Positions 5,999 to 28,627 of a stretch of DNA of 64,000 bases are shown piece after piece; within the stretch, counting starts at the first letter, position 1; each line of letters begins with the position of its first letter. Position numbers and translations under genes: made by a program. Below the pieces are notes generated by a model that saw only the letters and a list, made by a program, of their open reading frames with translations, was not told the origin of the DNA and did no database searches. This DNA comes from Paramoeba atlantica (Eukaryota > Protista > Discosea): contig CDRNVI010000041.1 in the NCBI GenBank assembly GCA_977017575.1, positions 409,898 through 473,897 on the forward strand, written 5' to 3'.

Positions 5999-6633
5999 TG
6001 GCCGAGGGTTCCGGTGGGGGGGAACCCCGTTAACAGAGTGACATTGATTGTGTTGTTTTATGCAGGCTTGTTTCTTTTCCATCTTTGTGCGTGTGAAATG
6101 AATGAATGATATGTTGTGTCATTTTGAATTACGATTGAGCTATTCATAGTTGTTCATTTATTCATATATGTTATCAGTGTATATGTTTCCAGGGAGCCCC
6201 TCGGCGTGGATTTCTAATAGTTCACGTTTTGAAATTTAGCCGAGGGGCGGCTATATATTTGCCTGCTGGCCCTTCGGGGCACATAATTTTCTCAAATTAT
6301 GATGTAGTATTCTCTAATTGCATGGAGGGGGGTGTTTACTCGTTTGTTATATTCTTGTTAGGTTGTTATTTTGTTACGTTTAAAGTTTTGTGCCCACCCA
6401 CCGAGCCCCCAGCCATTTGGCCGAGGGTTCCGGTGGGGGGGAACCCCGTTAACAGAGTGACATTGATTGTGTTGTTTTATGCAGGCTTGTTTCTTTTCCA
6501 TCTTTGTGCGTGTGAAATGAATGAATGATATGTTGTGTCATTTTGAATTACGATTGAGCTATTCATAGTTGTTCATTTATTCATATATGTTATCAGTGTA
6601 TATGTTTCCAGGGAGCCCCTCGGCGTGGATTTC
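5999..6633 (+). repeat. Split direct repeats B1 (5999-6214), A2 (6215-6391), B2 (6418-6633)
   Basis: Two 216-bp B copies ending GGCGTGGATTTC; A begins TAATAG. Confidence 0.9.
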
Positions 6634-6634
6634 A

Positions 6635-9077: not shown

Positions 9078-9244
9078 ATGATAGAAGTTTACGAATAGAA
9101 TTGTTCGAAGGGATTTATACGCCGATAAATGGCCGGCGGGCATTGTACGCTTGTATTTAGAATGATTTGAATATGCAGTTTAGTCCATACGATTATCGCC
9201 TTTATTTGAAGAAGTGTTTTTTCTCCATACAAAACTTTTTGTTT

Positions 9245-10330
9245 ATGCCTTCGTCGCCGCGAGAATCCCCACGTGAAACGCGAAGTTGTTCTCCCGACAT
9301 GGTGCCGGATAATCCGATGGGACGGGAGGAAATGTCAGTGTTGAAGTCAAGGGTTTGCGAGCAACTGCTCTTATCTAAGGAGTCTCATCCAGTTTTGCAT
9401 ATCAAGGCAGTGTGGCGACGAAAAAACGCGGCGACTTCGGCAAAGCGCATGTCTCATGGGAAAGTACGGCGGGAAGGGATGGAGATGTGGGCTGTTTGGG
9501 ATGACGAGCCGGGTAAAGAGTACCCTTTTCCGCATCAGCAGCTCGACTATTTCCGCGTGGATGTGGAGGACATGGGAGTGGTGGAAGGGAGTGGTGGGTT
9601 AGAGTTTATAGAGCTGGAAGGCGGACGGCCCCTGCCTCCCGGTGCACAGCCGGTGGTGCCCACGAGTGGAGTGAAGATTGACCCGTACGAGCCAATTACA
9701 TGGCCGGGGTATATCGACGCCAAACATGATGACGGATTTCGTCTCAGGGACTTATTTCGGGAATTGAAGGAGGCACCCGAATATGGATTGCGTCTAAATC
9801 AGTTTTTCCAGGATAGGTCTTTTCAGAGGCAGCAGGAGCGCAATTTCGATCAACTTCTTGGGAAATGGATTATACTAGCGCGTAAAACTCCAGGATGGAA
9901 TGAGGGTGAATTTCTCGAACTGGGCAAAGCAATCATTCAAAGTCTTCGCGATGCATATTGGAGGGCGTGTAAAGTTGATGTAGAAGCAGTGCATCGCAAA
10001 ATGGATAAGGATGACCGGGCTCACGACAAATTTTTTCAACATGTAACTGACCAATTGAGTGAGCGAGAAAAGTATAGGAACAGGTATGGTGCCACTTTCT
10101 TTGCGGGTCGCGCTGGTACGTTTGCACAATCGGGACCAGGGATCCAATCTACTCGTTCTCAACGTCCGCCATACGGGAATTACGGTCCCTCACCAACGTA
10201 TCGCCAACTTTGTTACAATTGTCGATCACCGGAGCACATAATCAAAGATTGCCCGTACAAACGTAGCTCCCTTCCGGATTTTCGCCAGCGGGCGGCTGGC
10301 AGCGCCTTCCAGGGCGCCAAGACGTTATGA
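9245..10330 (+). CDS. Gag-like protein with CCHC zinc knuckle
   Basis: CYNCRSPEHIIKDC (CX2CX4HX4C); homologous to 27212-28609. Confidence 0.85.
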   Translation: MPSSPRESPRETRSCSPDMVPDNPMGREEMSVLKSRVCEQLLLSKESHPVLHIKAVWRRKNAATSAKRMSHGKVRREGMEMWAVWDDEPGKEYPFPHQQLDYFRVDVEDMGVVEGSGGLEFIELEGGRPLPPGAQPVVPTSGVKIDPYEPITWPGYIDAKHDDGFRLRDLFRELKEAPEYGLRLNQFFQDRSFQRQQERNFDQLLGKWIILARKTPGWNEGEFLELGKAIIQSLRDAYWRACKVDVEAVHRKMDKDDRAHDKFFQHVTDQLSEREKYRNRYGATFFAGRAGTFAQSGPGIQSTRSQRPPYGNYGPSPTYRQLCYNCRSPEHIIKDCPYKRSSLPDFRQRAAGSAFQGAKTL

Positions 10331-10343
10331 AACGCCCGCCCGT
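10276..10343 (+). promoter_or_regulatory. Candidate -1 ribosomal frameshift site (G GAT TTT) with downstream stems
   Basis: In phase with gag; the -1 frame is open into the RT ORF; the same heptamer is at the same place in family 1. Confidence 0.6.
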
Positions 10344-13131
10344 CATTCGCCAGTGTTCCTACGATAAATTACAAACCAGTCAAGACGGGAACGACATTTT
10401 CGCATCGAACACCCACCAAACTCAGTCGGGGTGCAAAAGTAAGATACAGAAAGATTTATCCGGAGAGCGTCGAGGAAACGAGAAAGAAGAGGAGAACCGT
10501 TATGCCACCGGCTGCAGTGAATGTCACCAATTGCAGAGGAAAGTTGATTCCATGTGGGAGTATATATCAAGGCACGTTAAGCCTTCAGAGTATTACAGCG
10601 GGGCGGAAAAATCTGTTAAGTCTACTGATGGGAGTCAAGGAATTTACACCGGAAGTACGGGTAGCACTAGACGCGATGTCGGGGATGTGGAGTACGTCGA
10701 CTTGGGAAACAAGAGCACGAATATGGGAAAGATTTCGACAATTTTGCCAAGGGAAAAACGTTCATCTGACACCGATCCACGCAGTAGCTTTTGTACAATG
10801 CCTTCCAGTCACAATACAAACGAGAATAACCTACGGCCGAGCGTTGATGACGCTATTCAATCTGATCGGCGAATGTACTGTACCAATAAAATTTTTCTGC
10901 AAGGCACTCCAAGCACAAGGAGCAGAGGAACCCACACATCAGATGGAACCCTTGACACCATACCTGCTAAACAAGATACGGAGAAGGGTCACGCAAGCGG
11001 AAGGGCTAACGTTAATGATGAGTTGGAAGGCTGCATCACGATGGTCGGAAACAGCAAATTTGACACGAGAAAAGTTTGTCGAAGTGACTCCAGAACGGAT
11101 CGTAGTAGCTTGGGGAAGAGGCACCAAAGCAACTCGATGCAACCCATGGCGCGCATCAATGTATACAGTCATCAAGGGGGAAGGAACACGAGAACTAGCT
11201 CAGTACGTACTTACGCTGAAGCCGTGGGACAGAATGTGTCGCACCAATGTGAGACAGATGGACAAACTTATCAAGAGCGTTCTGGGCCAAGGCTTTGGAA
11301 CGCACTCCGCAAAGCGAGGCGCGGTGACGGAACTTTTCAAGGAAGTTGCAAACGGGAAATTGACGATCGAGGAGGTCAAGAATTTAGCAAAACATCAGCA
11401 GATCGAGTCTCTCCTCAGATACAATTCCAATCCGGTAACGACAGCCCTTGCACTTGGAACAGCAAACGCAACAGACAAACTGAAAACGCTCTAAAAACAG
11501 AATATTTATTTCGCCAGTACTTGCGGGACATGCCGCAAGAGAAAAACCGACATACGATTGTGCGTACGCGACGCACGACAAAGCTAGCGACGAATGAACA
11601 ATTGAATTTGCCGTTGCATGTGAAAAAGATTCCTGCTATGGATGTAAAAGCGATTGAGATGAAAATGAATGATACAACGAAAAGGCGGTTTCAAGACACT
11701 ATGGAGAAGTTATTGCTTTTACAACGAACACCGGATAGGGAGCCGAACATGGGGCCAAAATTATCAGTGCCAGACATTGAGGACTTAGTTCAAGCCAAAA
11801 TTCTATCAAAAGTTACACACGAAGAGGAGCGGAAACGTCCTTCCAACCAATGGATAATACCATTTACCGTGATTGAGCCAGCAGACGATACAGCAGAAAC
11901 TGAAAGAAGAAGATTTATAGCTTGGACAAAGGAGGATAACACGAGAATAAAGAACGAATATCTGCCATATGTTCCCCTGAAACATGCGGCTTATTACTTA
12001 CATCGAGCCAAGGAATCATATGGGTTGAAGCGAGACATGGCATGCGGATTCTATCAGGTGCCAATTCCGTTATATTCTCGAGCAAAATTTCGATTTCGAT
12101 CAGAGAACGGTGAATTGTATGAGCTAAACGTAATGCCGATGGGACATCGTTGTGCGCCTGAAATAATGCACACAATCACCGCTACACTGGCAGGAGACCC
12201 GAAGTACTGCACAGAGCAGGGTGCATATTCCGACTCTTTTCAGGCAGATGTTTATGTCGATGGGTTGAGATTTGCTGGTACAATTGAACAAACCGAAAAA
12301 TATAAGGATTTTGTGGATAAGCGCGCACAGGAAGTGGGAGTAACGTTCAAGGATATAGGCAAAGAACCGATGCAACAGTACGTTTTTAATGGAGTAGAAT
12401 ACTGCCATGAGGAAGGAAAAGTTAGAATGGGACCTAAAATCGTGAAGCGCATGCAAAACGATCGTTTTCGGAACACGACTTATGGAAAATTGGAGTCAGC
12501 AGTTGGAAGGTTGGTTCACGCATCGTCGGTTCTGGGTGAGCCCATCGCGAATTATCATTTTACGTTAAAATTGGTTCGTCGGCGTATAAATGCACTAAAC
12601 AACAATCCATCATTACTGGACAGGACAGCGTATCTCCCCCCGTATGTAACGATAGAGTTAACCAGGTGGAAGCACATATTGATTTCCAACAGATTAATAA
12701 CCCCACCACCGCATCCTGACACAGTGCCACACCGCCACAGAATTTACACCGACGCATCGGGAACAGGTTGGGGAGCGATTCTCTACTTAGATTTTGGTCC
12801 TATTGTTTGTGTGGGAGATAGGTGGGAAGATGATTTCGTGTACGAAGTAAACCGAGCCGAGACGAGGGCCGTTCGTCTTGCGTTCGAAAAATTAGCGCAT
12901 CACTTTCGACGTGGAACCTGTATCGATTTATTTATCGATAACACTTCGTGTCTAGCATCCATCAAGAAGAAGTCTACGAAGTCGGATGGGATCAGTATGG
13001 AGCTCACTGGGCTGTTGAATTTTTTAAGGAAGCAAGGAATTGCAGTTCAACCCCATTATGTAGCATCGAAAGAGAACCCCGCTGACCCATTGAGCCGGCA
13101 AAGAATTGCGAAAGGGGAAACAAGTGACTAG
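10327..13131 (+). CDS. RT-RNase H with N-terminal extension spanning the YR gene, family 3
   Basis: KRDMACGFYQV, MPMGH, YVDG, IYTDAS..GWGA, FIDNTS, NPADPLSR. Confidence 0.9.
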   Translation: MKRPPVIRQCSYDKLQTSQDGNDIFASNTHQTQSGCKSKIQKDLSGERRGNEKEEENRYATGCSECHQLQRKVDSMWEYISRHVKPSEYYSGAEKSVKSTDGSQGIYTGSTGSTRRDVGDVEYVDLGNKSTNMGKISTILPREKRSSDTDPRSSFCTMPSSHNTNENNLRPSVDDAIQSDRRMYCTNKIFLQGTPSTRSRGTHTSDGTLDTIPAKQDTEKGHASGRANVNDELEGCITMVGNSKFDTRKVCRSDSRTDRSSLGKRHQSNSMQPMARINVYSHQGGRNTRTSSVRTYAEAVGQNVSHQCETDGQTYQERSGPRLWNALRKARRGDGTFQGSCKREIDDRGGQEFSKTSADRVSPQIQFQSGNDSPCTWNSKRNRQTENALKTEYLFRQYLRDMPQEKNRHTIVRTRRTTKLATNEQLNLPLHVKKIPAMDVKAIEMKMNDTTKRRFQDTMEKLLLLQRTPDREPNMGPKLSVPDIEDLVQAKILSKVTHEEERKRPSNQWIIPFTVIEPADDTAETERRRFIAWTKEDNTRIKNEYLPYVPLKHAAYYLHRAKESYGLKRDMACGFYQVPIPLYSRAKFRFRSENGELYELNVMPMGHRCAPEIMHTITATLAGDPKYCTEQGAYSDSFQADVYVDGLRFAGTIEQTEKYKDFVDKRAQEVGVTFKDIGKEPMQQYVFNGVEYCHEEGKVRMGPKIVKRMQNDRFRNTTYGKLESAVGRLVHASSVLGEPIANYHFTLKLVRRRINALNNNPSLLDRTAYLPPYVTIELTRWKHILISNRLITPPPHPDTVPHRHRIYTDASGTGWGAILYLDFGPIVCVGDRWEDDFVYEVNRAETRAVRLAFEKLAHHFRRGTCIDLFIDNTSCLASIKKKSTKSDGISMELTGLLNFLRKQGIAVQPHYVASKENPADPLSRQRIAKGETSD
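10502..11494 (+). CDS. Tyrosine recombinase, family 3 (entirely within the RT frame)
   Basis: SRWSE, GTK, HSAKRG, KH, LLRY; frame already open from 10331. Confidence 0.88.
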   Translation: MPPAAVNVTNCRGKLIPCGSIYQGTLSLQSITAGRKNLLSLLMGVKEFTPEVRVALDAMSGMWSTSTWETRARIWERFRQFCQGKNVHLTPIHAVAFVQCLPVTIQTRITYGRALMTLFNLIGECTVPIKFFCKALQAQGAEEPTHQMEPLTPYLLNKIRRRVTQAEGLTLMMSWKAASRWSETANLTREKFVEVTPERIVVAWGRGTKATRCNPWRASMYTVIKGEGTRELAQYVLTLKPWDRMCRTNVRQMDKLIKSVLGQGFGTHSAKRGAVTELFKEVANGKLTIEEVKNLAKHQQIESLLRYNSNPVTTALALGTANATDKLKTL

Positions 13132-13142
13132 CGAAAGGGTGG

Positions 13143-14325
13143 TCCCCGCGTGGACACCCGTTCGCGATAGGGAGGGATGTATATCTCTCTGGGAGGTGAA
13201 AAGGATAGGTATAAAATATTTGATTATTTTGCGTACAAATAATGAAAGATGCATCATATTGGAAATTCAGCATACAGATGGATAGTAGGTTTAAAAGATA
13301 ATGAGAAATACATGTATGTTAAAATATTTTGAGATATTTCAATAGCAGATTAATATTAGGACTCGAGTAGTATGTACTTGTGAAATTAATGTTTCTTTCC
13401 CGGAGAGCAATTCTAGAAGTTTACGAATAGAATTGTTCGAAGGGATTTATACGCCGATAAATGGCCGGCGGGCATTGTACGCTTGTATTTAGAATGATTT
13501 GAATATGCAGTTTAGTCCATACGATTATCGCCTTTATTTGAAGAAGTGTTTTTTCTCCATACAAAACTTTTTGTCCCACCCACCAGCCCCCAAACCACTC
13601 CCCGCGTGGACACCCGTTCGCGATAGGGAGGGATGTATATCTCTCTGGGAGGTGAAAAGGATAGGTATAAAATATTTGATTATTTTGCGTACAAATAATG
13701 ATAGATGCATCATATTGGAAATTCAGCATACAGATGGATAGTAGGTTTAAAAGATAATGAGAAATACATGTATGTTAAAATATTTTGAGATATTTCAATA
13801 GCAGATTAATATTAGGACTCGAGTAGTATGTACTTGTGAAATTAATGTTTCTTTCCCGGAGAGCAATTCTAGAAGTTTACGAATAGAATTGTTCGAAGGG
13901 ATTTATACGCCGATAAATGGCCGGCGGGCATTGTACGCTTGTATTTAGAATGATTTGAATATGCAGTTTAGTCCATACGATTATCGCCTTTATTTGAAGA
14001 AGTGTTTTTTCTCCATACAAAACTTTTTGTCCCACCCACCAGCCCCCAAACCACTCCCCGCGTGGACACCCGTTCGCGATAGGGAGGGATGTATATCTCT
14101 CTGGGAGGTGAAAAGGATAGGTATAAAATATTTGATTATTTTGCGTACAAATAATGAAAGATGCATCATATTGGAAATTCAGCATACAGATGGATAGTAG
14201 GTTTAAAAGATAATGAGAAATACATGTATGTTAAAATATTTTGAGATATTTCAATAGCAGATTAATATTAGGACTCGAGTAGTATGTACTTGTGAAATTA
14301 ATGTTTCTTTCCCGGAGAGCAATTC
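13143..14325 (+). repeat. B1-A2-B2-A3-B3 terminal repeats (456-bp period)
   Basis: 271-bp B x3, 161-bp A x2, C-rich linkers. Confidence 0.92.
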
Positions 14326-14892
14326 TGTTGTAAACGTGATCTGGAGCTTTGGAGTGTGAGTTTATCTCTTCTTGGTGTTCTTTTTCGTCCCCGCCGTCCA
14401 TAGACATTTGATCGCGCATCTCCTCGTCGGTGGCCTTGGATTCGACTTCCGTATCACTTGTTAAATCTTGATCGAACTCCATTTCCAACGGTACCTCTTT
14501 TGACTTCGCTGAGGATGTCTCCATTCGAAAAGTTGTTGTTTTAATCTTGATCGTGTTTCGAGGATGGGGTTTTCGAGGCTCGACGTCGTCGTTCATACCG
14601 TGATCTGCCCAGTTTCTTGGTAATTCCTTGGGCTCGATGAATTTGATTCGTGGCTTCTTTTTCAGAGTTGCTGCTACTTTTATTTCTGGTGAAGTTTGTT
14701 CACATTTTTCCTCGCATTGAAGATGAATTCTTGTAGCCTCTATATCTTTATGATTTTTTGGCTTCGAGAGCCGTCCATGATTCACTGTGGGTTCCTTCAA
14801 TTTCTTCTTGACTTGTGTGGTACTTCGCGTCGGTGTCCGAGAAAGGCGTGTCATGAGAAAGAAAAATTAAAGAAAGCAACAAGGTACAGAAA
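14326..14892 (-). pseudogene. SL-capped 5' fragment of a probable CRE-like element ORF, cut by YR family 3
   Basis: SL 3' part at 14877-14892; ORF MTRLSRTP...APDHV resembles the APDHV end of the ORF at 24912-25681. Confidence 0.55.
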
Positions 14893-14909
14893 GTAGTGGT
14901 ACAGAAAGT

Positions 14910-15124
14910 AGAGGTGGTCCAGGCAACTCACCACCTCTTTACGCAGCCGGAGGGGCGTACTGCAACCGACTCGGTCCCAGTCGGTAGAGGTGGTCCAGGC
15001 AACTCACCACCTCTTTACGCAGCCGGAGGGGCGTACTGCAACCGACTCGGTCCCAGTCGGTAGAGGTGGTCCAGGCAACTCACCACCTCTTTACGCAGCC
15101 GGAGGGGCGCACTGCAACCGACCG
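14910..15124. repeat. 76-bp tandem repeat (about 2.8 copies), two hairpins per unit
   Basis: Unit starts at 14911, 14987, 15063; stems AGAGGTGGT/ACCACCTCT and ACCGACT/AGTCGGT. Confidence 0.9.
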
Positions 15125-15323
15125 CTGCCTCGCGATAATGCGAGGCAGAGTCACGCCCAGTGGTCCTCAAGGGAGGCCACCATGGCGCATAGCTCCCGGG
15201 AAGAGACAGGCGCGAGAAGAAGAAAGCCGGGGAGGGAAGAAAACTCACTCAAGGAGTGAGCCGGGGAGGGGTGAAAAGTCGGAAGTACGTCCCCTACTTC
15301 CACGACAAAGAGGGACAGTCCCT

Positions 15324-15437
15324 GCTAGCCGTCAGCCGGAAACGGGCATTTAAAAGGAAAATGTATGCCCGTTTCCGGGAAAAGAAAGGAAGGGCTAGCA
15401 AAATGTACCAACAAGGTACAGAAACTGTATCTTTATC
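15324..15437 (-). ncRNA. Candidate spliced-leader RNA gene or pseudogene (SL exon + GT intron)
   Basis: GATAAAGATACAGTTTCTGTACCTTGTTG|GTACATTTTG; TGTAC/GTACA stem across the donor; Sm-like ATTTTG; nested 7-bp and 14-bp stems. Confidence 0.45.
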
Positions 15438-16982
15438 ACGGGATCGCCGATAACCCAAGGGACGTAGGGTCAAATTGAAACGTGTTGACTTCCGCAAGGG
15501 AAAACGATGTGCGACATGCCCCCGTCCCATCACGCGTTCGCTTGCTTGCGTTGAACGCACAAGTTTGAAAGCACGCCAAGATTTCGACACAGAACAACGC
15601 AGGGACGACCAAGCCTCTCTCGTAGAGCATGTCCCTGACGGTGCCTGTTTGCTGGACCGTGTTTCAGCAACGCAAATTGGCGTGAGGAAGACGAGTTTGT
15701 CAATTCCCCTGCGCTTTTCAGCACTTTACGTGTTGGACGCGTTGAAAAGGGTTATTTTCTGACCAATCACCGCAACGACCGAACGCGACAACGAAACGGC
15801 TCACGTACGAAGTTGCTTAACAGTGGGCCACTGGTTCGCGAGGTCTGAAATCAAGCTGTGTTTTGTGAGATGAAGCAGATTGCTTCTTTGTAGAGCCTCG
15901 ATGGGGATGTTTTGGAGTAATGGCGGATGCCCCCTTGTTCTATTCTATTCTATTTGACACCCATTTGGCCTTGACAGGCTGTGGGTCCTCTACCGTCCAC
16001 GCGAGGGGGCCCGACGGCTCGGATGTTACTCCGATGCGTACGACCGGTCCTTGCGGACCGGCGGGCGAAACCCACACAGCTGTTCGTGTGGACTATTGTG
16101 TGTGTGTGTGTTGGAAGATTGAACTCCATGGATAAAGTTCTGCGTATGCTTGCCTTTTATTTGTGCGTGGTTTTAAATTTCTTTGGCATTGGCAAATTTT
16201 GTTTTGTTTCTCTTTTCCACATGCCGTCCATTTTTGTGCGCTTGTGTTTGTGGAATGTTGTGCCCACTCCACTGCGCAGTGAGTGTTACAAGGGCTGCCG
16301 CCCCCACACGCCCTTTGCTTCACGTTACGGTGGGTATGGCACTTTCGGTGCGTAGACCACTTTACGAAGCGATTGGGAGATGCACAAACCCTCCATCACA
16401 ACGGGGCGTTCGACGCCCCCCTCCCCTCGTGCAAATACGTAGAAATGACTGCACCTCGCCATTCCAGGCCCTGTGCGGACACACGGGATCGCCGATAACC
16501 CAAGGGACGTAGGGTCAAATTGAAACGTGTTGACTTCCCCAAGGGAAAACGATGTGCGACATGCCCCCGTCCCATCACGCGTTCGCTTGCTTGCGTTGAA
16601 CGCACAAGTTTGAAAGCACGCCAAGATTTCGACACAGAACAACGCAGGGACGACCAAGCCTCTCTCGTAGAGCATGTCCCTGACGGTGCCTGTTTGCTGG
16701 ACCGTGTTTCAGCAACGCAAATTGGCGTGAGGAAGACGAGTTTGTCAATTCCCCTGCGCTTTTCAGCACTTTACGTGTTGGACGCGTTGAAAAGGATTAT
16801 TTTCTGACCAATCACCGCAACGACCGAACGCGACAACGAAACGGCTCACGTACGAAGTTGCTTAACAGTGGGCCACTGGTTCGCGAGGTCTGAAATCAAG
16901 CTGTGTTTTGTGAGATGAAGCAGATTGCTTCTTTGTAGAGCCTCGATGGGGATGTTTTGGAGTAATGGCGGATGCCCCCTTG

Positions 16983-17846
16983 TTCTATTCTATTCTATTT
17001 GACACCCATTTGGCCTTGACAGGCTGTGGGTCCTCTACCGTCCACGCGAGGGGGCCCGACGGCTCGGATGTTACTCCGATGCGTACGACCGGTCCTTGCG
17101 GACCGGCGGGCGAGCCAGCCGTAGAAAGCCACGGCTGGCACTTCACTTAGGACGGGAGTCGGAGACGCAGCGTGGCTAGGCCACACACTGACCAGCGGTC
17201 CCTACGAGAGGGGCAACCAATCCTCCGCGCGCCTTCAAAGAAGGTGGTACAAAACGTTTAATTTAAAGTTATTGAATTCCAGATGCCCTACGTTTCCTTT
17301 TTCGAGCCCACGTCCCGTCTTCTTTGTGGTTCTTTATAGCTTGGGCCCACCTATTTCTGTTCTGGGCCATCGTCTTCCACAGTTGTGGTGGTATTCCTGA
17401 CCTTTCACACGCTTTTTCTACGGCTTGAACGTAAGGAGGATTTGTGCATGGTAAGCGGTGGTGCATTAGTATCCCGAATAGCGTCTTATTAGGGTGCCGA
17501 TGTTCATCCATACGAGCTACGTGCCCTGCATAGCTGAGAATTCTTAGGTCATAAAGCAGTTGAGTAGGCTCCATGTCAGACATTCCCATCACCTCGGAGT
17601 TGCTGGTTCGTTTGCGTTCGGGGCAGGTATTTCCATCAATTGGGCTCCATGGAATCTTGAGTGCCCTCCGGATCATACTCAAGTAGTGGACATCTAGTGT
17701 ACTTTGGAGTTTGGCGTCCAGCGCCCGGGACACACTTCCGTACATCAACCGTGGATAGACGTAAATCTTAAAGACAGTTGACTTCCGGTGCCTGGAGATG
17801 AGTTTGTTATTCCAAATCGATTTTAACTCGTGTATTTTAGTCTGTG
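16983..17846 (-). mobile_element. 5'-truncated RTE-type LINE fragment (RT C-terminus, structured 3' UTR, (AATAG)n tail), array copy 1
   Basis: LKSIW...YPRLMYG...YAGHVARM...AQNRNRW; short-repeat tail at 16983-16999. Confidence 0.75.
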
Positions 17847-18920
17847 CAACAAGGTACCCCCTTGTTAGGGTCGCATAAATGTATTTTGCCCCCGACCGCT
17901 CTCAATTTCCGTTTTTGTGGATTCGAATTGTTGCTTGGAAATGTTGATTTTGGTGATTGGGACCGTGGTGGTCAGGTCGGGAATGTACCTTGCCTCTGTA
18001 GATGGGGGCCCACACAGCTGTTCGTGTGGACTATTGTGTGTGTGTGTGTTGGAAGATTGAACTCCATGGATAAAGTTCTGCGTATGCTTGCCTTTTATTT
18101 GTGCGTGGTTTTAAATTTCTTTGGCATTGGCAAATTTTGTTTTGTTTCTCTTTTCCACATGCCGTCCATTTTTGTGCGCTTGTGTTTGTGGAATGTTGTG
18201 CCCACTCCACTGCGCAGTGAGTGTTACAAGGGCTGCCGCCCCCACACGCCCTTTGCTTCACGTTACGGTGGGTATGGCACTTTCGGTGCGTAGACCACTT
18301 TACGAAGCGATTGGGAGATGCACAAACCCTCCATCACAACGGGGCGTTCGACGCCCCCCTCCCCTCGTGCAAATACGTAGAAATGACTGCACCTCGCCAT
18401 TCCAGGCCCTGTGCGGACACACGGGATCGCCGATAACCCAAGGGACGTAGGGTCAAATTGAAACGTGTTGACTTCCCCAAGGGAAAACGATGTGCGACAT
18501 GCCCCCGTCCCATCACGCGTTCGCTTGCTTGCGTTGAACGCACAAGTTTGAAAGCACGCCAAGATTTCGACACAGAACAACGCAGGGACGACCAAGCCTC
18601 TCTCGTAGAGCATGTCCCTGACGGTGCCTGTTTGCTGGACCGTGTTTCAGCAACGCAAATTGGCGTGAGGAAGACGAGTTTGTCAATTCCCCTGCGCTTT
18701 TCAGCACTTTACGTGTTGGACGCGTTGAAAAGGGTTATTTTCTGACCAATCACCGCAACGACCGAACGCGACAACGAAACGGCTCACATACGAAGTTGCT
18801 TAACAGTGGGCCACTGGTTCGCGAGGTCTGAAATCAAGCTGTGTTTTGTGAGATGAAGCAGATTGCTTCTTTGTAGAGCCTCGATGGGGATGTTTTGGAG
18901 TAATGGCGGATGCCCCCTTG

Positions 18921-19784
18921 TTCTATTCTATTCTATTTGACACCCATTTGGCCTTGACAGGCTGTGGGTCCTCTACCGTCCACGCGAGGGGGCCCGACGG
19001 CTCGGATGTTACTCCGATGCGTACGACCGGTCCTTGCGGACCGGCGGGCGAGCCAGCCGTAGAAAGCCACGGCTGGCACTTCACTTAGGACGGGAGTCGG
19101 AGACGCAGCGTGGCTAGGCCACACACTGACCAGCGGTCCCTACGAGAGGGGCAACCAATCCTCCGCGCGCCTTCAAAGAAGGTGGTACAAAACGTTTAAT
19201 TTAAAGTTATTGAATTCCAGATGCCCTACGTTTCCTTTTTCGAGCCCACGTCCCGTCTTCTTTGTGGTTCTTTATAGCTTGGGCCCACCTATTTCTGTTC
19301 TGGGCCATCGTCTTCCACAGTTGTGGTGGTATTCCTGACCTTTCACACGCTTTTTCTACGGCTTGAACGTAAGGAGGATTTGTGCATGGTAAGCGGTGGT
19401 GCATTAGTATCCCGAATAGCGTCTTATTAGGGTGCCGATGTTCATCCATACGAGCTACGTGCCCTGCATAGCTGAGAATTCTTAGGTCATAAAGCAGTTG
19501 AGTAGGCTCCATGTCAGACATTCGCATCACCTCGGAGTTGCTGGTTCGTTTGCGTTCGGGGCAGGTATTTCCATCAATTGGGCTCCATGGAATCTTGAGT
19601 GCCCTCCGGATCATACTCAAGTAGTGGACATCTAGTGTACTTTGGAGTTTGGCGTCCAGCGCCCGGGACACACTTCCGTACATCAACCGTGGATAGACGT
19701 AAATCTTAAAGACAGTTGACTTCCGGTGCCTGGAGATGAGTTTGTTATTCCAAATCGATTTTAACTCGTGTATTTTAGTCTGTG
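18921..19784 (-). mobile_element. RTE-type LINE fragment, array copy 2
   Basis: Copy of 16983-17846 (+1938). Confidence 0.75.
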
Positions 19785-20858
19785 CAACAAGGTACCCCCT
19801 TGTTAGGGTCGCATAAATGTATTTTGCCCCCGACCGCTCTCAATTTCCGTTTTTGTGGATTCGAATTGTTGCTTGGAAATGTTGATTTTGGTGATTGGGA
19901 CCGTGGTGGTCAGGTCGGGAATGTACCTTGCCTCTGTAGATGGGGGCCCACACAGCTGTTCGTGTGGACTATTGTGTGTGTGTGTGTTGGAAGATTGAAC
20001 TCCATGGATAAAGTTCTGCGTATGCTTGCCTTTTATTTGTGCGTGGTTTTAAATTTCTTTGGCATTGGCAAATTTTGTTTTGTTTCTCTTTTCCACATGC
20101 CGTCCATTTTTGTGCGCTTGTGTTTGTGGAATGTTGTGCCCACTCCACTGCGCAGTGAGTGTTACAAGGGCTGCCGCCCCCACACGCCCTTTGCTTCACG
20201 TTACGGTGGGTATGGCACTTTCGGTGCGTAGACCACTTTACGAAGCGATTGGGAGATGCACAAACCCTCCATCACAACGGGGCGTTCGACGCCCCCCTCC
20301 CCTCGTGCAAATACGTAGAAATGACTGCACCTCGCCATTCCAGGCCCTGTGCGGACACACGGGATCGCCGATAACCCAAGGGACGTAGGGTCAAATTGAA
20401 ACGTGTTGACTTCCCCAAGGGAAAACGATGTGCGACATGCCCCCGTCCCATCACGCGTTCGCTTGCTTGCGTTGAACGCACAAGTTTGAAAGCACGCCAA
20501 GATTTCGACACAGAACAACGCAGGGACGACCAAGCCTCTCTCGTAGAGCATGTCCCTGACGGTGCCTGTTTGCTGGACCGTGTTTCAGCAACGCAAATTG
20601 GCGTGAGGAAGACGAGTTTGTCAATTCCCCTGCGCTTTTCAGCACTTTACGTGTTGGACGCGTTGAAAAGGGTTATTTTCTGACCAATCACCGCAACGAC
20701 CGAACGCGACAACGAAACGGCTCACATACGAAGTTGCTTAACAGTGGGCCACTGGTTCGCGAGGTCTGAAATCAAGCTGTGTTTTGTGAGATGAAGCAGA
20801 TTGCTTCTTTGTAGAGCCTCGATGGGGATGTTTTGGAGTAATGGCGGATGCCCCCTTG

Positions 20859-21722
20859 TTCTATTCTATTCTATTTGACACCCATTTGGCCTTGACAGGC
20901 TGTGGGTCCTCTACCGTCCACGCGAGGGGGCCCGACGGCTCGGATGTTACTCCGATGCGTACGACCGGTCCTTGCGGACCGGCGGGCGAGCCAGCCGTAG
21001 AAAGCCACGGCTGGCACTTCACTTAGGACGGGAGTCGGAGACGCAGCGTGGCTAGGCCACACACTGACCAGCGGTCCCTACGAGAGGGGCAACCAATCCT
21101 CCGCGCGCCTTCAAAGAAGGTGGTACAAAACGTTTAATTTAAAGTTATTGAATTCCAGATGCCCTACGTTTCCTTTTTCGAGCCCACGTCCCGTCTTCTT
21201 TGTGGTTCTTTATAGCTTGGGCCCACCTATTTCTGTTCTGGGCCATCGTCTTCCACAGTTGTGGTGGTATTCCTGACCTTTCACACGCTTTTTCTACGGC
21301 TTGAACGTAAGGAGGATTTGTGCATGGTAAGCGGTGGTGCATTAGTATCCCGAATAGCGTCTTATTAGGGTGCCGATGTTCATCCATACGAGCTACGTGC
21401 CCTGCATAGCTGAGAATTCTTAGGTCATAAAGCAGTTGAGTAGGCTCCATGTCAGACATTCGCATCACCTCGGAGTTGCTGGTTCGTTTGCGTTCGGGGC
21501 AGGTATTTCCATCAATTGGGCTCCATGGAATCTTGAGTGCCCTCCGGATCATACTCAAGTAGTGGACATCTAGTGTACTTTGGAGTTTGGCGTCCAGCGC
21601 CCGGGACACACTTCCGTACATCAACCGTGGATAGACGTAAATCTTAAAGACAGTTGACTTCCGGTGCCTGGAGATGAGTTTGTTATTCCAAATCGATTTT
21701 AACTCGTGTATTTTAGTCTGTG
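20859..21722 (-). mobile_element. RTE-type LINE fragment, array copy 3
   Basis: Copy of 16983-17846 (+3876). Confidence 0.75.
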
Positions 21723-22796
21723 CAACAAGGTACCCCCTTGTTAGGGTCGCATAAATGTATTTTGCCCCCGACCGCTCTCAATTTCCGTTTTTGTGGATTC
21801 GAATTGTTGCTTGGAAATGTTGATTTTGGTGATTGGGACCGTGGTGGTCAGGTCGGGAATGTACCTTGCCTCTGTAGATGGGGGCCCACACAGCTGTTCG
21901 TGTGGACTATTGTGTGTGTGTGTGTTGGAAGATTGAACTCCATGGATAAAGTTCTGCGTATGCTTGCCTTTTATTTGTGCGTGGTTTTAAATTTCTTTGG
22001 CATTGGCAAATTTTGTTTTGTTTCTCTTTTCCACATGCCGTCCATTTTTGTGCGCTTGTGTTTGTGGAATGTTGTGCCCACTCCACTGCGCAGTGAGTGT
22101 TACAAGGGCTGCCGCCCCCACACGCCCTTTGCTTCACGTTACGGTGGGTATGGCACTTTCGGTGCGTAGACCACTTTACGAAGCGATTGGGAGATGCACA
22201 AACCCTCCATCACAACGGGGCGTTCGACGCCCCCCTCCCCTCGTGCAAATACGTAGAAATGACTGCACCTCGCCATTCCAGGCCCTGTGCGGACACACGG
22301 GATCGCCGATAACCCAAGGGACGTAGGGTCAAATTGAAACGTGTTGACTTCCCCAAGGGAAAACGATGTGCGACATGCCCCCGTCCCATCACGCGTTCGC
22401 TTGCTTGCGTTGAACGCACAAGTTTGAAAGCACGCCAAGATTTCGACACAGAACAACGCAGGGACGACCAAGCCTCTCTCGTAGAGCATGTCCCTGACGG
22501 TGCCTGTTTGCTGGACCGTGTTTCAGCAACGCAAATTGGCGTGAGGAAGACGAGTTTGTCAATTCCCCTGCGCTTTTCAGCACTTTACGTGTTGGACGCG
22601 TTGAAAAGGGTTATTTTCTGACCAATCACCGCAACGACCGAACGCGACAACGAAACGGCTCACATACGAAGTTGCTTAACAGTGGGCCACTGGTTCGCGA
22701 GGTCTGAAATCAAGCTGTGTTTTGTGAGATGAAGCAGATTGCTTCTTTGTAGAGCCTCGATGGGGATGTTTTGGAGTAATGGCGGATGCCCCCTTG

Positions 22797-23660
22797 TTCT
22801 ATTCTATTCTATTTGACACCCATTTGGCCTTGACAGGCTGTGGGTCCTCTACCGTCCACGCGAGGGGGCCCGACGGCTCGGATGTTACTCCGATGCGTAC
22901 GACCGGTCCTTGCGGACCGGCGGGCGAGCCAGCCGTAGAAAGCCACGGCTGGCACTTCACTTAGGACGGGAGTCGGAGACGCAGCGTGGCTAGGCCACAC
23001 ACTGACCAGCGGTCCCTACGAGAGGGGCAACCAATCCTCCGCGCGCCTTCAAAGAAGGTGGTACAAAACGTTTAATTTAAAGTTATTGAATTCCAGATGC
23101 CCTACGTTTCCTTTTTCGAGCCCACGTCCCGTCTTCTTTGTGGTTCTTTATAGCTTGGGCCCACCTATTTCTGTTCTGGGCCATCGTCTTCCACAGTTGT
23201 GGTGGTATTCCTGACCTTTCACACGCTTTTTCTACGGCTTGAACGTAAGGAGGATTTGTGCATGGTAAGCGGTGGTGCATTAGTATCCCGAATAGCGTCT
23301 TATTAGGGTGCCGATGTTCATCCATACGAGCTACGTGCCCTGCATAGCTGAGAATTCTTAGGTCATAAAGCAGTTGAGTAGGCTCCATGTCAGACATTCG
23401 CATCACCTCGGAGTTGCTGGTTCGTTTGCGTTCGGGGCAGGTATTTCCATCAATTGGGCTCCATGGAATCTTGAGTGCCCTCCGGATCATACTCAAGTAG
23501 TGGACATCTAGTGTACTTTGGAGTTTGGCGTCCAGCGCCCGGGACACACTTCCGTACATCAACCGTGGATAGACGTAAATCTTAAAGACAGTTGACTTCC
23601 GGTGCCTGGAGATGAGTTTGTTATTCCAAATCGATTTTAACTCGTGTATTTTAGTCTGTG
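22797..23660 (-). mobile_element. RTE-type LINE fragment, array copy 4
   Basis: Copy of 16983-17846 (+5814). Confidence 0.75.
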
Positions 23661-24868
23661 CAACAAGGTACCCCCTTGTTAGGGTCGCATAAATGTATTT
23701 TGCCCCCGACCGCTCTCAATTTCCGTTTTTGTGGATTCGAATTGTTGCTTGGAAATGTTGATTTTGGTGATTGGGACCGTGGTGGTCAGGTCGGGAATGT
23801 ACCTTGCCTCTGTAGATGGGGGCCCACACAGCTGTTCGTGTGGACTATTGTGTGTGTGTGTGTTGGAAGATTGAACTCCATGGATAAAGTTCTGCGTATG
23901 CTTGCCTTTTATTTGTGCGTGGTTTTAAATTTCTTTGGCATTGGCAAATTTTGTTTTGTTTCTCTTTTCCACATGCCGTCCATTTTTGTGCGCTTGTGTT
24001 TGTGGAATGTTGTGCCCACTCCACTGCGCAGTGAGTGTTACAAGGGCTGCCGCCCCCACACGCCCTTTGCTTCACGTTACGGTGGGTATGGCACTTTCGG
24101 TGCGTAGACCACTTTACGAAGCGATTGGGAGATGCACAAACCCTCCATCACAACGGGGCGTTCGACGCCCCCCTCCCCTCGTGCAAATACGTAGAAATGA
24201 CTGCACCTCGCCATTCCAGGCCCTGTGCGGACACACGGGATCGCCGATAACCCAAGGGACGTAGGGTCAAATTGAAACGTGTTGACTTCCCCAAGGGAAA
24301 ACGATGTGCGACATGCCCCCGTCCCATCACGCGTTCGCTTGCTTGCGTTGAACGCACAAGTTTGAAAGCACGCCAAGATTTCGACACAGAACAACGCAGG
24401 GACGACCAAGCCTCTCTCGTAGAGCATGTCCCTGACGGTGCCTGTTTGCTGGACCGTGTTTCAGCAACGCAAATTGGCGTGAGGAAGACGAGTTTGTCAA
24501 TTCCCCTGCGCTTTTCAGCACTTTACGTGTTGGACGCGTTGAAAAGGGTTATTTTCTGACCAATCACCGCAACGACCGAACGCGACAACGAAACGGCTCA
24601 CGTACGAAGTTGCTTAACAGTGGGCCACTGGTTCGCGAGGTCTGAAATCAAGCTGTGTTTTGTGAGATGAAGCAGATTGCTTCTTTGTAGAGCCTCGATG
24701 GGGATGTTTTGGAGTAATGGCGGATGCCCCCTTGTTCTATTCTATTCTATTTGACACCCATTTGGCCTTGACAGGCTGTGGGTCTTCTACCGTCCACGCG
24801 AGGGGGCCCGACGGCTCTGATCGTTACTCCGATGCGTACGACCGGTCCTTGCGGACCGGCGGGCGAGC

Positions 24869-27024
24869 CTGTACCTTGTTGACATTTTTTTTACTATCTC
24901 TCTCACGCATTATGCAGCAGCGAGTGCTTGTCATCCACAGTGGAACTGTGCAGGATAATGACTCAGTCTTCACCTTCGGTTCGGCGAAAGAGCAGATGTG
25001 TGATACGGAACAAAAATCTGTTTCGCAACCGCGCACGCGAAGAGGTGGACCCATCACAGTACAAACTTTGGACGACATTGGTTTTGGAAAACGTAAGAAA
25101 AAGCATCGCCGGCCAGTGTGGCGTCCGCTCGACCTTGATCCAACTAAAGAGGGAAATTCCACCGGTTCTGACAGTGAGAAACGTGAAATGCCACGCAAAG
25201 TGTCCAGGAGCCGCGTTCCGGATTCGCCGCAACCCAAAAGCTTGGGAAAAGCAGAGAAGCCGAGTGCGAAAACGAAAAGCCAAAATAAAGGGCAAAAAGG
25301 CGAGATTATGGGGAAGGAGGACGCGCAAAAGAAGGATCAACACTCATTCGAGAGCAAGAGTCTACAAAGCCCACCTCCCCCAGTAAATATACAAGACAAC
25401 TGGACGAAACAAGGACGGGGCGTTTCCAAACAAGAAAACAATGAAATATCCGAATCCAAGCACCAGACGCCCTCGACTGTGAAGGGACACAATCCACGAG
25501 AACGTGCGCCAGTTGAACACCTTGTACCTCAAGAACGCGATTCAGACATAGAGGCCGATGCTGAGTACTGTGACTCGTCGGAAGATAACGAAAATGCAGG
25601 AAACTCGCCCATAGCTCCCGACCACGTTCTTCGGAAAATCTCGGATTGGGGTAAAGGAACGACGTGTGCAGTACGGTGGTGTAATAGTCCACGTTTGGAA
25701 ATTTAGCCGCGGGGCAGGGAGTTGTTTATGCCTGCTTGGCCCTTCGGGGCACATAATTTCTTCAAATTATGATTTGTTTCAAATAGTGTTGTAATTTCAT
25801 TATTCATTCTTTATATTCTTGGTAGGCTATTTTTTCTACTTACGTTTCAAAAGTTTTTGTGCCCGCCCACCGAGCCCCCAGCCATTTGGTCGAGGGTTCC
25901 GGTGGGGGGAACCCCGTTAACAGAGTGACAGTGACATATATGTTTGCAGGCCTAAAATTGTCGTGAGAACATATTATTTACAGTTTAATGTTGATGTTAT
26001 GTTTTGAGATTGGGAAATAGGGCTTGTGAGCAATCAGATACATTTTAGTTGTTTCTTTGTTTACTATTCGATACATGTTATTTATTATGCCCCGCGGCGT
26101 GGATTTCTTTTCGAAACCCTCAGAATCGAATCTACGAATCGATTGGTGAAGTTGTTTCCAGAAAACTGCGAAAGAAAGCGTTGAACATCAAAATTTCGTA
26201 CCATCCAGCCCCTGACGAAGCCGGGCCCTCTGGAAATCTTTATCTTCCCCAGTCGACGAAAATCAAGGTTTTCGGCATCCGAGCAACTCATCTACGCCGT
26301 GATCCAGATTGTGAAGTTTCAACGACGATATGCGCGGCAGAAGATGCGGACGACACAGATCACGGGTGTGACCTAGGGCCTTTGCCTTCTTTCTCCCAGA
26401 TCGATCCGACGTTTTCTGTGCATGTGGTAGCTATTTTCCGTTCGATCATAAGAGACTATCCGAGACTTAAACTATCCTCAGAAAAAGATGCATTATGGCA
26501 AAAATTCCTCAACGCCCCACGAGACTCACTAGTAAGCGTGCGGAAAGCTATCCAAAGACGGGAAAGCATCCCGCATAGCCATAAGAGCGCCAATGCCAAG
26601 GAAAATGTATTTTTATCCAAAGAGGAGGTAAAGGAGCTCGAAGTTGACCGCCGCTCAATACGCAACGCTCTCCATGCAGCTCGTGCAGGAAATTTAAGTA
26701 AAGCAACCAGAGTCCTGGACAACGTTTATGTAGACTCCCAACTCAGCGTGGAAAAAGTGCGAAAATTGAAAGACCTTCATCCCACAGGTGATCCACCACC
26801 TGCGTCATCAGTAGAATACCCACGGGCTGGCGTAATCGAGATGGACGAGGTTCGCTCAGCGGTAAACAAACTCGCGCATGGAGCAGCCCCAGGCCCGACG
26901 GGATTGAGCGAAAACATCCTCCGCTTACTGACTGATGACGTGGTATGTTGTTCAGGTTTGTGCCACATGATTAGAGATGTCATCAACGGAGAAATAAGCA
27001 CATCAGTTCGCAACCGTCTGACAC
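24869..27024 (+). mobile_element. SL-capped CRE/SLACS-like non-LTR element (5' half), interrupted by a solo YR repeat and truncated by a YR element
   Basis: CTGTACCTTGTTG at 24869-24881; frame restored when 25682-26107 is removed; AGNLSKATRVLDN and PGPTGLSE shared with the RT at 47179-49550. Confidence 0.8.
25682..26107 (+). mobile_element. Solo A-B terminal repeat of a family-1-like YR element (solo-LTR analogue, 426 bp)
   Basis: Begins TAATAGTCCACG, ends GGCGTGGATTTC, no ORFs; no target-site duplication. Confidence 0.85.
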
Positions 27025-27211
27025 TAATAGTCCACGTTTTGAAATTTAGCCGAGGGGCTGTTATGTATTTGCCTGCTGGCCCTTCGGGGCACATAGTTTC
27101 TTCGAATTATGATTTGTATTCCGAATTTTACATGGGCTGGGTATTTACTATTATCTTATATATCCTTGTTAGGTTGTTATTTACTTCGCTTTAAGTTTTT
27201 GTGAGATCCCA

Positions 27212-28609
27212 ATGAGATCCCAACGTTTGCGGGCTCCTCAGGAGCCGAGCCAGGACCGTGATCGCTCTCCAAAGCGTGACCGGGCGCCAACACCCGTTGA
27301 AACCTCCTCTTTTGCTTCCAAACGCCAGTCTCTTTCATGTCCTCCCGTGCGCCCCCCTCTCCCTCCTCTCCCCACGCAGCCGGCTCCGCAGGTATCCGCG
27401 CGACCTCCTCCTGTTCCCCTTACCCCTGGACCGGCGCGGCGCAAGGTACGCCCTTCAGGAAGAGCACTCAGCCCCGCCCGCGAACCGCCTAGCCCTCTCC
27501 CTTCTAACCTCCCCAGTTTGCCGGCGAGCTCCCTCCCTAGCCCGTATCCATTTCCGCTGGAGGCTCCGGAGCCCCATATTCGACGTAGAGGAACCCTCAA
27601 CCCCGACCAGGTTGAGGCTTCTCGCTCGCCGCGCCGTTACGAGGCCCTCGACCTTGACCACGTCGGGATGCCTCAGCGTTCACGCTGTGATGCGCGTGGG
27701 ATCATGACACAATCTAGCAAAGAAGAATTCATCACGAAAGTGATTGAGCTTCTGCGCAAAGACTACGAGGTCACCGTTGAAGCTGTATGGTCTCTTCCCC
27801 GGGATGGCCTACGGCAGACGGTTATAGGGTTGGTGCATATGACGCATCCAAAGGACCCTAACTCAACTGAGTTGTTCGCCGAGTGGGATGGGGACAAGAA
27901 CACTGCCTACCGTTTTCCCCATCCCGAGATCAACTACCACTCTTTGGAACTGTCCCATGTTCGGGCGCAGATGCCGGGTGGGAAACCAGTTGAAGATCTG
28001 ATCCCCACGTTTGAACGCGTCCGTATTACGGACCCGAAAGGCTTCTCCCCCTACGATCCGGTTACTTGGCAACCGTGGATCGACACGGATGATTTGTTCA
28101 AGCCACGTGAACTCATCCGTGAGCTGCGCGAAGCTCCGCAGCTTGGGGTACGCTTCAACCCTCCGCCGCAGCGTGAGCGCCTGTTCAAGATGTTAACTGA
28201 ATGGGTGTACGCTGCGTGCAATACGGAGGGATGGCTAGAGAAGCACAACCTCGCCGTAGCCCTTCTCATCATCGAAGAGCTTCGCAACCATTATTGGGCT
28301 GCGGCGGGCGTTGCTGTCGAACGTGTGCAACAGCGGTTGCACCGCGACGACGATCCTCAGGACCGTTACGGTCAGCTCGTTGTGGATGAGCAACTGAGGG
28401 GCCGAACCGCTCAGCGTGCTCCCCGACGACGCAGCCAAGGACCTTTCTGTTTTGGCTGCCATCAGCCAGGCCACCTACGATCGAACTGCCCCCAATCGTC
28501 CCAACAGCAGGGGGGGCAGTTCCGTACCCAGCGCACCCCGCAACAGGATTTTCGCGGCGGGGTGGTGGGCGGCGCCAACCGTTACGGCGCAACACGGGCT
28601 TTCCACTAG
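27212..28609 (+). CDS. Gag-like protein, Pro-rich N-terminus, CCHC knuckle
   Basis: CFGCHQPGHLRSNC; homologous to 9245-10330. Confidence 0.85.
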   Translation: MRSQRLRAPQEPSQDRDRSPKRDRAPTPVETSSFASKRQSLSCPPVRPPLPPLPTQPAPQVSARPPPVPLTPGPARRKVRPSGRALSPAREPPSPLPSNLPSLPASSLPSPYPFPLEAPEPHIRRRGTLNPDQVEASRSPRRYEALDLDHVGMPQRSRCDARGIMTQSSKEEFITKVIELLRKDYEVTVEAVWSLPRDGLRQTVIGLVHMTHPKDPNSTELFAEWDGDKNTAYRFPHPEINYHSLELSHVRAQMPGGKPVEDLIPTFERVRITDPKGFSPYDPVTWQPWIDTDDLFKPRELIRELREAPQLGVRFNPPPQRERLFKMLTEWVYAACNTEGWLEKHNLAVALLIIEELRNHYWAAAGVAVERVQQRLHRDDDPQDRYGQLVVDEQLRGRTAQRAPRRRSQGPFCFGCHQPGHLRSNCPQSSQQQGGQFRTQRTPQQDFRGGVVGGANRYGATRAFH

Positions 28610-28627
28610 GAAATGCCCCCCACCCCA
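28546..28627 (+). promoter_or_regulatory. Candidate -1 frameshift site (G GAT TTT) with stimulatory stem
   Basis: In gag phase; -1 frame read codon by codon is open to the RT ORF; 28558-28569 can pair with 28616-28627. Confidence 0.6.

Follow-up and report, generated by a model that had tools for sequence, protein, structure and literature searches.

Programmed -1 ribosomal frameshifting at the gag-pol junction is textbook biology for retroviruses and long terminal repeat (LTR) elements. Papers on tyrosine-recombinase (YR) retrotransposons describe an overlap between the recombinase and polymerase frames, and in the literature we searched we found no expression mechanism for this overlap in DIRS1-like elements, nor any recoding. 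The VIPER elements have been reviewed as usually lacking open reading frame (ORF) overlaps (PMC3266345). We found no mention of frameshifting or readthrough for VIPER in the same literature, in which the original VIPER paper (Lorenzi et al. 2006) was not included, so that a prior mention is possible. No programmed -1 signal in nuclear genes of the Euglenozoa was described in the literature searched. Here we analyse two VIPER-type elements, A and B, in a 64,000-nucleotide (nt) stretch of DNA deposited under Paramoeba atlantica (assembly GCA_977017575.1, contig CDRNVI010000041.1, positions 409,898 to 473,897; hereafter the window). At the end of gag, each carries a slippery heptamer and a covarying RNA structure that very probably direct ribosomes into a reverse transcriptase (RT) and RNase H (RH) frame, across the entire overlapping YR gene. 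All coordinates are window positions on the + strand unless stated otherwise.

The window is crowded with retroelements. Elements A (approximately 9.08-14.35 kb) and B (approximately 27.2-31.5 kb) are VIPER-type YR retrotransposons of the order DIRS. Both consist of a gag-like ORF, a YR of 330-390 residues, and RT/RNase H encoded in a 2.9-3.1 kb ORF in the -1 frame, with which the YR gene overlaps. The RT/RNase H region gave weak Pfam matches to RVT_1 and RT_RNaseH, and its translations contain the RNase H motifs TDAS...E...DN...D. Neither element has a methyltransferase, and the Pfam scan gave no further domains. A profile built from an alignment of RT/RH from 15 relatives retrieved 1244 representatives at E<1e-30, and the nearest named relatives found by search were a Diplonema papillatum protein and a prokinetoplastid transcript. 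In that alignment, the place where motif C of RT (YxDD) would be expected has the consensus Y-[VI]-D-G, with W-I-D-N in T. cruzi and a single invariant Asp. A preliminary description of this stretch, made from the letters alone, had called the two families very diverged, and they share only 29% (gag), 47% (YR) and 36% (RT) amino-acid identity. Their features, together with a third, incomplete copy, are as follows.

9082-9242, + strand: 5' split direct repeat A1 of element A (repeat search), 161 nt recurring at 13414-13574 and 13870-14030
9167-10330, + strand: gag-like ORF of element A (ORF list), ending in the stop TGA at 10328-10330
approximately 10208-10255, + strand: CCHC zinc knuckle of the element A gag (Pfam zf-CCHC, E 2.7e-5)
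10267-13131, + strand: -1-frame ORF of element A, with a linker of about 400 codons to 11494 and an RT/RNase H core at about 11527-13128
10276-10282, + strand: slippery heptamer G_GAU_UUU of element A, in gag phase
10288-10343, + strand: putative stimulatory structure of element A (folding, -26.7 kcal/mol; covariation)
10331-11494, + strand: YR of element A, in the gag frame (conserved R-K-H-R-H-Y positions; AlphaFold model resembling Cre)
13143-14354, + strand: 3' split direct repeats of element A, a 456-nt unit present three times (B1-A2-B2-A3-B3)
27212-28609, + strand: gag-like ORF of element B, with a CFGCHQPGHLRSNC knuckle and the stop TAG at 28607-28609
28390-31467, + strand: -1-frame ORF of element B (linker and RT/RNase H)
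28546-28552, + strand: slippery heptamer G_GAU_UUU of element B, in gag phase
28559-28626, + strand: putative stimulatory structure of element B (folding, -36 kcal/mol; covariation)
28613-29782, + strand: YR of element B, in the gag frame, its ATG two codons past the gag stop
2376-5420, + strand: copy C, of the B family (93-96% amino-acid identity to it), retaining YR (2530-3714) and the -1 ORF

The heptamer GGATTTT lies near the end of gag in both elements, with its first G as the third base of a gag codon and its start 52 nt (A) or 61 nt (B) before the gag stop. The preliminary description had placed it in phase at these two sites, and had named it as a plant-virus slippery heptamer. This proved correct on both counts: GGAUUUU is a documented -1 site of Pea enation mosaic virus 2 (PEMV2), in which a GGGUUUU mutant shifted at 112% of the wild-type level (PMC4737148; PMC5009743). 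Across the elements with this layout the heptamer is in gag phase, 22-76 nt upstream of the gag stop, and takes the forms GGAUUUU, GGGUUUU, GGUUUUU, GGCUUUU, GGGAAAC, AAAAAAC and AAAAAAA. Because the PEMV2 GGAUUUU shifts and GGGUUUU can substitute for it, the variation seen here is between working sites. Where gag does not overlap the -1 frame, 0.31% of its codon positions carry an in-phase slippery heptamer, whereas exactly one was present inside this overlap in 13 of 13 elements.

For these comparisons we took relatives from further contigs of this assembly, from Logan assemblies and from ENA and JGI metagenomes, and added three published VIPER sequences, giving about 25 elements. The conservation that the preliminary description had proposed to check was borne out, as nearly all of the intact elements keep the heptamer, the open -1 frame and the shared layout, down to 25-30% protein identity. 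Six further families in this genome have GGATTTT, GGTTTTT or GGGTTTT, and a second organism (Logan SRR22388325) has GGATTTT twice. Three ENA/Logan contigs (L010-L012) have GGGAAAC, GGGTTTT and GGGAAAC respectively; in L012, the open stretch of the -1 frame begins exactly with the heptamer. Ten JGI metagenome loci gave GGGAAAC (five), GGGTTTT (two), GGATTTT and GGCTTTT (one each) and one locus with no recognised heptamer. In the published copies we read, by eye, TCA AAA AAC with a 6-nt spacer in T. cruzi, CAA AAA AAA in C. fasciculata and AAG GGA AAC in B. saltans (PMC6681497, supplement 10). The tabulated T. cruzi frames agree with this reading, with ORF1 at 6599-7939, ORF2 from 7940, and ORF3 from 7816, which is the -1 frame (PMC6681497, supplement 2); the ORF table in supplement 3 of that paper was unusable for frames in most species, many of its lengths not being multiples of three. 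A covariance model of the junction missed the distant cassettes L009-L012, which were located through their reading frames instead. L009 (Diplonema papillatum GCA_030068145.1, JAPJBO010000842.1) comprises several decayed copies of the same element type and has no junction, and the D. papillatum gene model KAJ9446256.1 is stitched across such decayed copies.

Downstream of the heptamer, A and B both fold into a three-way junction that encloses the gag stop, beginning 5-6 nt past the heptamer and ending 6-17 nt past the stop. In element A the outer stem pairs 10288-10295 with 10336-10343, starting 5 nt after the heptamer, and holds a hairpin H2 (approximately 10297-10319) and a hairpin H3 (10323-10334), the loop of which includes the gag stop. 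In element B the outer stem pairs GGGGUGG (28559-28565) with CCACCCC (28620-28626), starting 6 nt after the heptamer, with H2 (GCGCC/GGCGC, approximately 28572-28590) and H3 (28600-28613), whose loop contains the UAG. The preliminary description had recognised the GCGCC/GGCGC hairpin inside an outer stem, which we confirmed in A and B. However, it had placed the complement of CGGGCGG in element A one base away from 10336-10342, where we find it, and it did not mention the third hairpin with the gag stop in its loop.

RNAalifold, run on 12 junctions, recovered the outer stem and the inner hairpin, with compensatory changes in 7 of 12 pairs. A covariance-model alignment of 15 junctions had 86% of cells paired, compared to 39-58% when the 3' partners were slid, and a covariation score of 0.326, compared to 0.04-0.14 with slid partners; none of 500 shuffles reached the observed values. 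The 3' arm of element A is two columns off in this alignment, so that its compensatory pair is undercounted. The outer-stem arms differ between families yet still pair (GGGGUGG/CCACCCC, CGGGCGG/CCGCCCG, GGGGGA/UCCCCC), and the inner hairpin appears as GCGCC/GGCGC, CUGCU/AGCAG, CUGCC/GGCAG and GCAC/GUGC. The sequence of the stop-loop hairpin H3 differs in nearly every family; its arms are unaligned and stand outside the formal covariation score, and our hand-picked table of H3 arms is biased to pairing and serves as illustration only. When the elements were folded one by one, the three-way junction formed again, with a hairpin loop around the stop, and more distant elements have different stems at the equivalent place. 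The spacer between heptamer and stem is 4-7 nt in nearly all elements. In T. cruzi, a perfect 10-bp stem begins 6 nt after the heptamer and encloses TGA ATG (-33.8 kcal/mol, z = -4.3). RNAalifold also found a further covarying hairpin at 28640-28665 (+ strand), about 30 nt past the gag stop, only in B-like families. This hairpin and its equivalents in L007, L001 and L002 have compensatory arms, CCCGUCGUC/GACGACGGG as against CCCCUUGCC/GGCAAAGGG, and others.

The -1 frame is open from the gag end through the whole of YR and into RT/RNase H, as the preliminary description had said. In element A the last -1 stop is at 10264 and the frame opens 9 nt before the heptamer, then stays open to 13129; in element B it is open over 28390-31465, opening 156 nt before the heptamer. 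Across elements this frame is stop-free for 900-1000 codons, and often AUG-free for hundreds. Over the YR gene there was no -1 stop in 20 of 21 elements, compared to 5-17 stops after synonymous shuffling of YR. The first -1 AUG occurs 6-488 codons past the shift site (259 in element B, 370 in L003 and 488 in L017); because it can be as far as 488 codons downstream, initiation in the -1 frame does not explain the open stretch.

The earlier idea of about 1 kb of dual coding survived in part. The frame is indeed kept open; however, comparison of related copies revealed no second conserved protein, since substitutions in the overlap track YR codon positions only. For the pair of element B and L007a, the rate at YR third positions was 0.55 in the overlap, against 0.57 at RT third positions outside it. 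The linker peptide has 21-41% identity where YR has 43-71%, so that divergence of the -1 peptide is about double that of YR. Selection thus acts on this frame only to keep it free of stops and translatable, and does not conserve it as a second protein. Polar or charged amino acids make up 65-73% of linker residues and hydrophobics are few; the linker of about 400 residues is polar and probably disordered. An open, AUG-poor, unconstrained frame reaching back to a slippery site is what would be expected if ribosomes enter it by shifting, and we saw no other explanation that would fit all elements.

These observations argue strongly that programmed -1 frameshifting at the end of gag yields a Gag-RT fusion, which we consider very probable. 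The full-length RNA would be decoded from one gag-terminal recoding module, at which most ribosomes would terminate at the gag stop and release Gag. A minority would pause on G_GAU_UUU, held by the GC-rich three-way junction that starts 5-7 nt beyond it and has the gag stop inside. These paused ribosomes would slip back by one base, read about 400 codons of the -1 frame overprinting the whole of YR, and continue through RT/RNase H, to give a product of the form Gag-linker-RT/RH. In this scheme the shifting itself, its rate and the route to YR are inferred.

RT/RH could instead be made from an internal AUG or from a subgenomic mRNA trans-spliced to a spliced leader, with the heptamer and stems incidental or used otherwise. 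Trans-splicing is the rule in Euglenozoa and the window contains spliced-leader-like motifs; there is a -1 ATG near the gag end in some elements, as an ATGA overlapping the stop in A and two relatives, and the annotated start of ORF3 in T. cruzi is an ATG 124 nt upstream of where gag ends. However, the first -1 ATG is 128-488 codons past the heptamer in many elements, with the frame stop-free all the way back to the heptamer, the ATG overlapping the stop is not conserved, and the heptamer, its phase and its spacing are kept although the heptamer type varies, all of which make an independent start for RT very unlikely. Because several gene calls share a 4-nt overlap, the ATGA was also considered separately as a stop-restart site for RT, and was rejected as the -1 codon at this place is TTG or absent in other families. 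Slippage of RNA polymerase on the U or A run could also set the RT register in some transcripts, leaving ribosomes unshifted. Long A runs are known slippage sites (PMC5009743), and T. cruzi has A6 and C. fasciculata A8 at the site, but most elements have only U4-U5 or GGGAAAC, too short for efficiency. The conserved codon phase of the heptamer matters only to ribosomes, the covarying stem 4-7 nt downstream has the spacing typical of ribosomal stimulators, and there were no length variants at 10276-10343 in the DNA contigs. Polymerase slippage is the least probable of the explanations that we considered, and we regard it as extremely unlikely.

Several points weigh against ribosomal frameshifting as a general explanation. 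The elements compared are related, and counts across them are not counts of independent events. A public run labelled 'RNA?' contained nothing on the element. A fusion with no protease domain and an unconstrained linker of about 400 residues would be unusual. L014 has no recognised heptamer. The metagenomic relative L004 (1057-1130) has an in-phase GGGUUUU and the stems, and its hairpin loop contains a TAA, but past the stop the frames of YR and RT are one base out of register; a dead copy with an indel is the probable reading, with a real variant as the alternative. L006 and L007b are decayed. The frames of the T. cruzi, C. fasciculata and B. saltans copies were read by eye and not computed, save for the fold, and several tabulated B. 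saltans copies have other frame relations (PMC6681497). B. saltans also has its strong hairpin approximately 28 nt after the heptamer, a non-canonical spacing. Finally, single elements of the A/B clade reach only modest folding z-scores (-0.8 to -2.6), an effect of their high GC content; the case for the structure rests on covariation and position, not on stability.

The middle ORF was characterised by sequence and by structural modelling. Its catalytic positions R, K, H, (R), H and RY are conserved in an alignment of ten relatives, with the second Arg replaced by His in two members. Pfam Phage_integrase matched two of these ten YR members (best E 6e-6), a Pfam scan of the window's own YR proteins gave no match, and a sequence profile run against the PDB gave marginal integrase matches only. 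The AlphaFold model (predicted local distance difference test score 83) matched full-length Cre with a TM score of 0.6 and E 3e-8. As modelled, the middle ORF is a tyrosine recombinase with a Cre-like fold.

The gag frame of element A stops at 10328, reopens at 10331 and runs to 11492, with its first ATG at 10502, 57 codons past the stop, while element B has TAG GAA ATG at the gag stop (28607) and its YR runs to 29780. The preliminary description had reported both arrangements accurately, and had proposed that one mRNA yields three products, Gag, Gag-RT by frameshift, and YR by readthrough or reinitiation. The comparison of about 25 elements upholds the frameshift, and leaves the route to YR plausible. 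The position of YR in the gag frame is not independent evidence, because it follows of necessity from two other relations, the -1 position of RT relative to gag and the +1 overlap of YR with RT. We think that translation of YR is probably coupled to the gag stop, and of the possible routes we favour readthrough, ahead of reinitiation and of a separate mRNA.

Readthrough of a leaky gag stop would give a Gag-YR fusion. The gag frame was open from the gag stop to the first in-frame ATG in 21 of 21 elements, 770 codons summed and up to 99 in one element, and there are 121 codons between these points in B. saltans. Under a conservative null that keeps the -1 peptide, the combined probability of 770 open codons was about 10^-5.75, with elements treated as independent. 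The gag stop is UGA or UAG in the approximately 25 intact copies and never UAA, although the YR genes of A and B end in TAA. UGA-CU is a classic leaky stop context. UGA-C occurs at the gag stop in 10 of about 25 elements (UGA-CUN, UGA-CGA or UGA-CAG), eight of them UGA-CU. However, at half of the stops the +4 base is a purine (UGA-A or UAG-G), and the region past the stop is variable and basic, with no peptide conservation demonstrated. Folding only the RNA 3' of the stop gave no shared structure, and none at the usual spacing of about 8 nt is common to all families. On balance we give readthrough close to an even chance. The other possibility is that YR is translated by termination-coupled reinitiation at an AUG by the gag stop, or from its own trans-spliced mRNA, which taken together we consider a serious possibility, if short of even. 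An AUG lies 0-2 codons past the stop in five of about 25 elements, namely T. cruzi and L008 (TGA ATG), B and L001b (TAG GAA ATG) and L007a (TAG GGA ATG); these represent at least three lineages, where about 5% would be expected by chance, and the stop is in the hairpin loop of a conserved structure. Against such a restart, the first in-frame AUG is 8-121 codons away in most elements, and L002b has AGG where its relatives have ATG. Taken singly, a separate mRNA or internal initiation for YR appears doubtful, and reinitiation where an AUG abuts the stop appears a little less probable still. The stop-free codons and the identity of the stop favour readthrough, while the AUG near the stop favours restart, and lineages may differ in this respect.

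Combining the two routes, one module could act as a three-way switch on a single mRNA, between termination, a -1 shift, and readthrough or restart, throughout the VIPER clade of Euglenozoa including T. cruzi; we put this forward tentatively, as a possibility below even. The conserved cassette would offer a concrete model for how overlapping YR and polymerase genes are expressed in the VIPER clade, a question left open in the literature searched. This clade accounts for a visible share of the T. cruzi genome. A frame of about 400 overprinted codons, kept only for the passage of ribosomes, has implications for the way in which genome scans recognise overlapping genes and 'dual coding'. The cassette is also usable as a marker to tell intact from decayed elements.

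Other observations concern the element copies and their surroundings. Split direct repeats of the form A1...B1-A2-B2 are present in element A, and a repeat search at a minimum length of 40 nt found none in element B. In a public run whose kind is unrecorded, a contig joins 9111 to 13142, which corresponds to element A collapsed to its terminal repeats, comparable to the SIRE derivative of VIPER; depth over the element A repeats was several-fold above that of the element body. Copy C is truncated at about 2510, a few bases 5' of the gag stop, and is without gag and heptamer, with the 3' arm of the outer stem kept. The host of these elements belongs to the Euglenozoa. In the window there are seven copies of the kinetoplastid-type spliced-leader core CAGTTTCTGTAC, compared to 0.3 expected, at 15416 (-), 31537 (+), 32216 (-), 32248 (+), 36893 (+), 41403 (+) and 59081 (-). 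Three of these copies immediately precede ORFs that encode RVT_1 and LsmAD domains and start at 32261, 36906 and 41464, and one is 70 nt past the RT stop of element B. Given this placement, the elements could have been inserted in spliced-leader genes or copied from trans-spliced RNA. A tandem array at about 15900-24450, with a period of about 1938 bp, carries a set of small ORFs five times and has no Rfam match; an Rfam scan of the whole window at the gathering threshold likewise gave no match. A large ORF at 52021-56100 (- strand) has endonuclease/exonuclease/phosphatase, RVT_1 and RNase H domains, and looks like an ingi/L1Tc-like non-LTR retrotransposon.

Among known systems, VIPER of T. 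cruzi (Ribeiro et al. 2019, PMC6681497) is the closest to elements A and B. It has the same gag-YR-RT/RH order, a YR/RT overlap and no methyltransferase, element A shares with it the split direct repeats, and a CCHC knuckle is likewise present in gag. The YR motifs MW..TW...R, HSIKRGA and AKH....RY are common to these proteins, a kinship to T. cruzi and C. fasciculata judged by eye. A similar heptamer and stem stand at the end of gag in the copies published for T. cruzi, C. fasciculata and B. saltans, although the families in the window are far diverged from them, with identity judged by eye only. DIRS1-like elements have the same extensive overlap of YR and polymerase frames (PMC3266345), but unlike A and B they have inverted terminal repeats, an internal complementary region and a methyltransferase domain.

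The gag end itself resembles recoding sites in viruses. As at the retroviral and LTR gag-pol junction, a slippery heptamer lies in gag phase within a short overlap, followed by a few-base spacer and a stable structure, and the polymerase would be made as a minority Gag fusion. However, here the shifted ribosome would first cross about 400 codons that overprint a complete YR and are selected only against stops, there is no protease domain to free RT, and a third protein is encoded in the zero frame behind the gag stop. The non-canonical heptamer G_GAU_UUU is identical to that of PEMV2 and of further -1 sites in umbraviruses or dianthoviruses, and the interchange with G_GGU_UUU, experimental in PEMV2, occurs here naturally between families. 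The PEMV2 stop is 3 nt past the heptamer and shifting involves long-distance RNA interactions, whereas here the stop is 22-76 nt downstream and inside the structure. Readthrough of the murine leukaemia virus type likewise has an enzyme gene in frame directly past gag, the stop of which is UAG-G or UGA and lies close to structured RNA; in contrast, the elements described here have no shared pseudoknot about 8 nt past the stop, and their readthrough would operate beside a frameshift on the same RNA. What appears to be new, relative to these systems, is that such a site is present in Euglenozoa and in elements of this order, that shifted ribosomes would pass over a whole YR gene in an open, unconserved frame, and that a third gene lies in frame behind the same stop.

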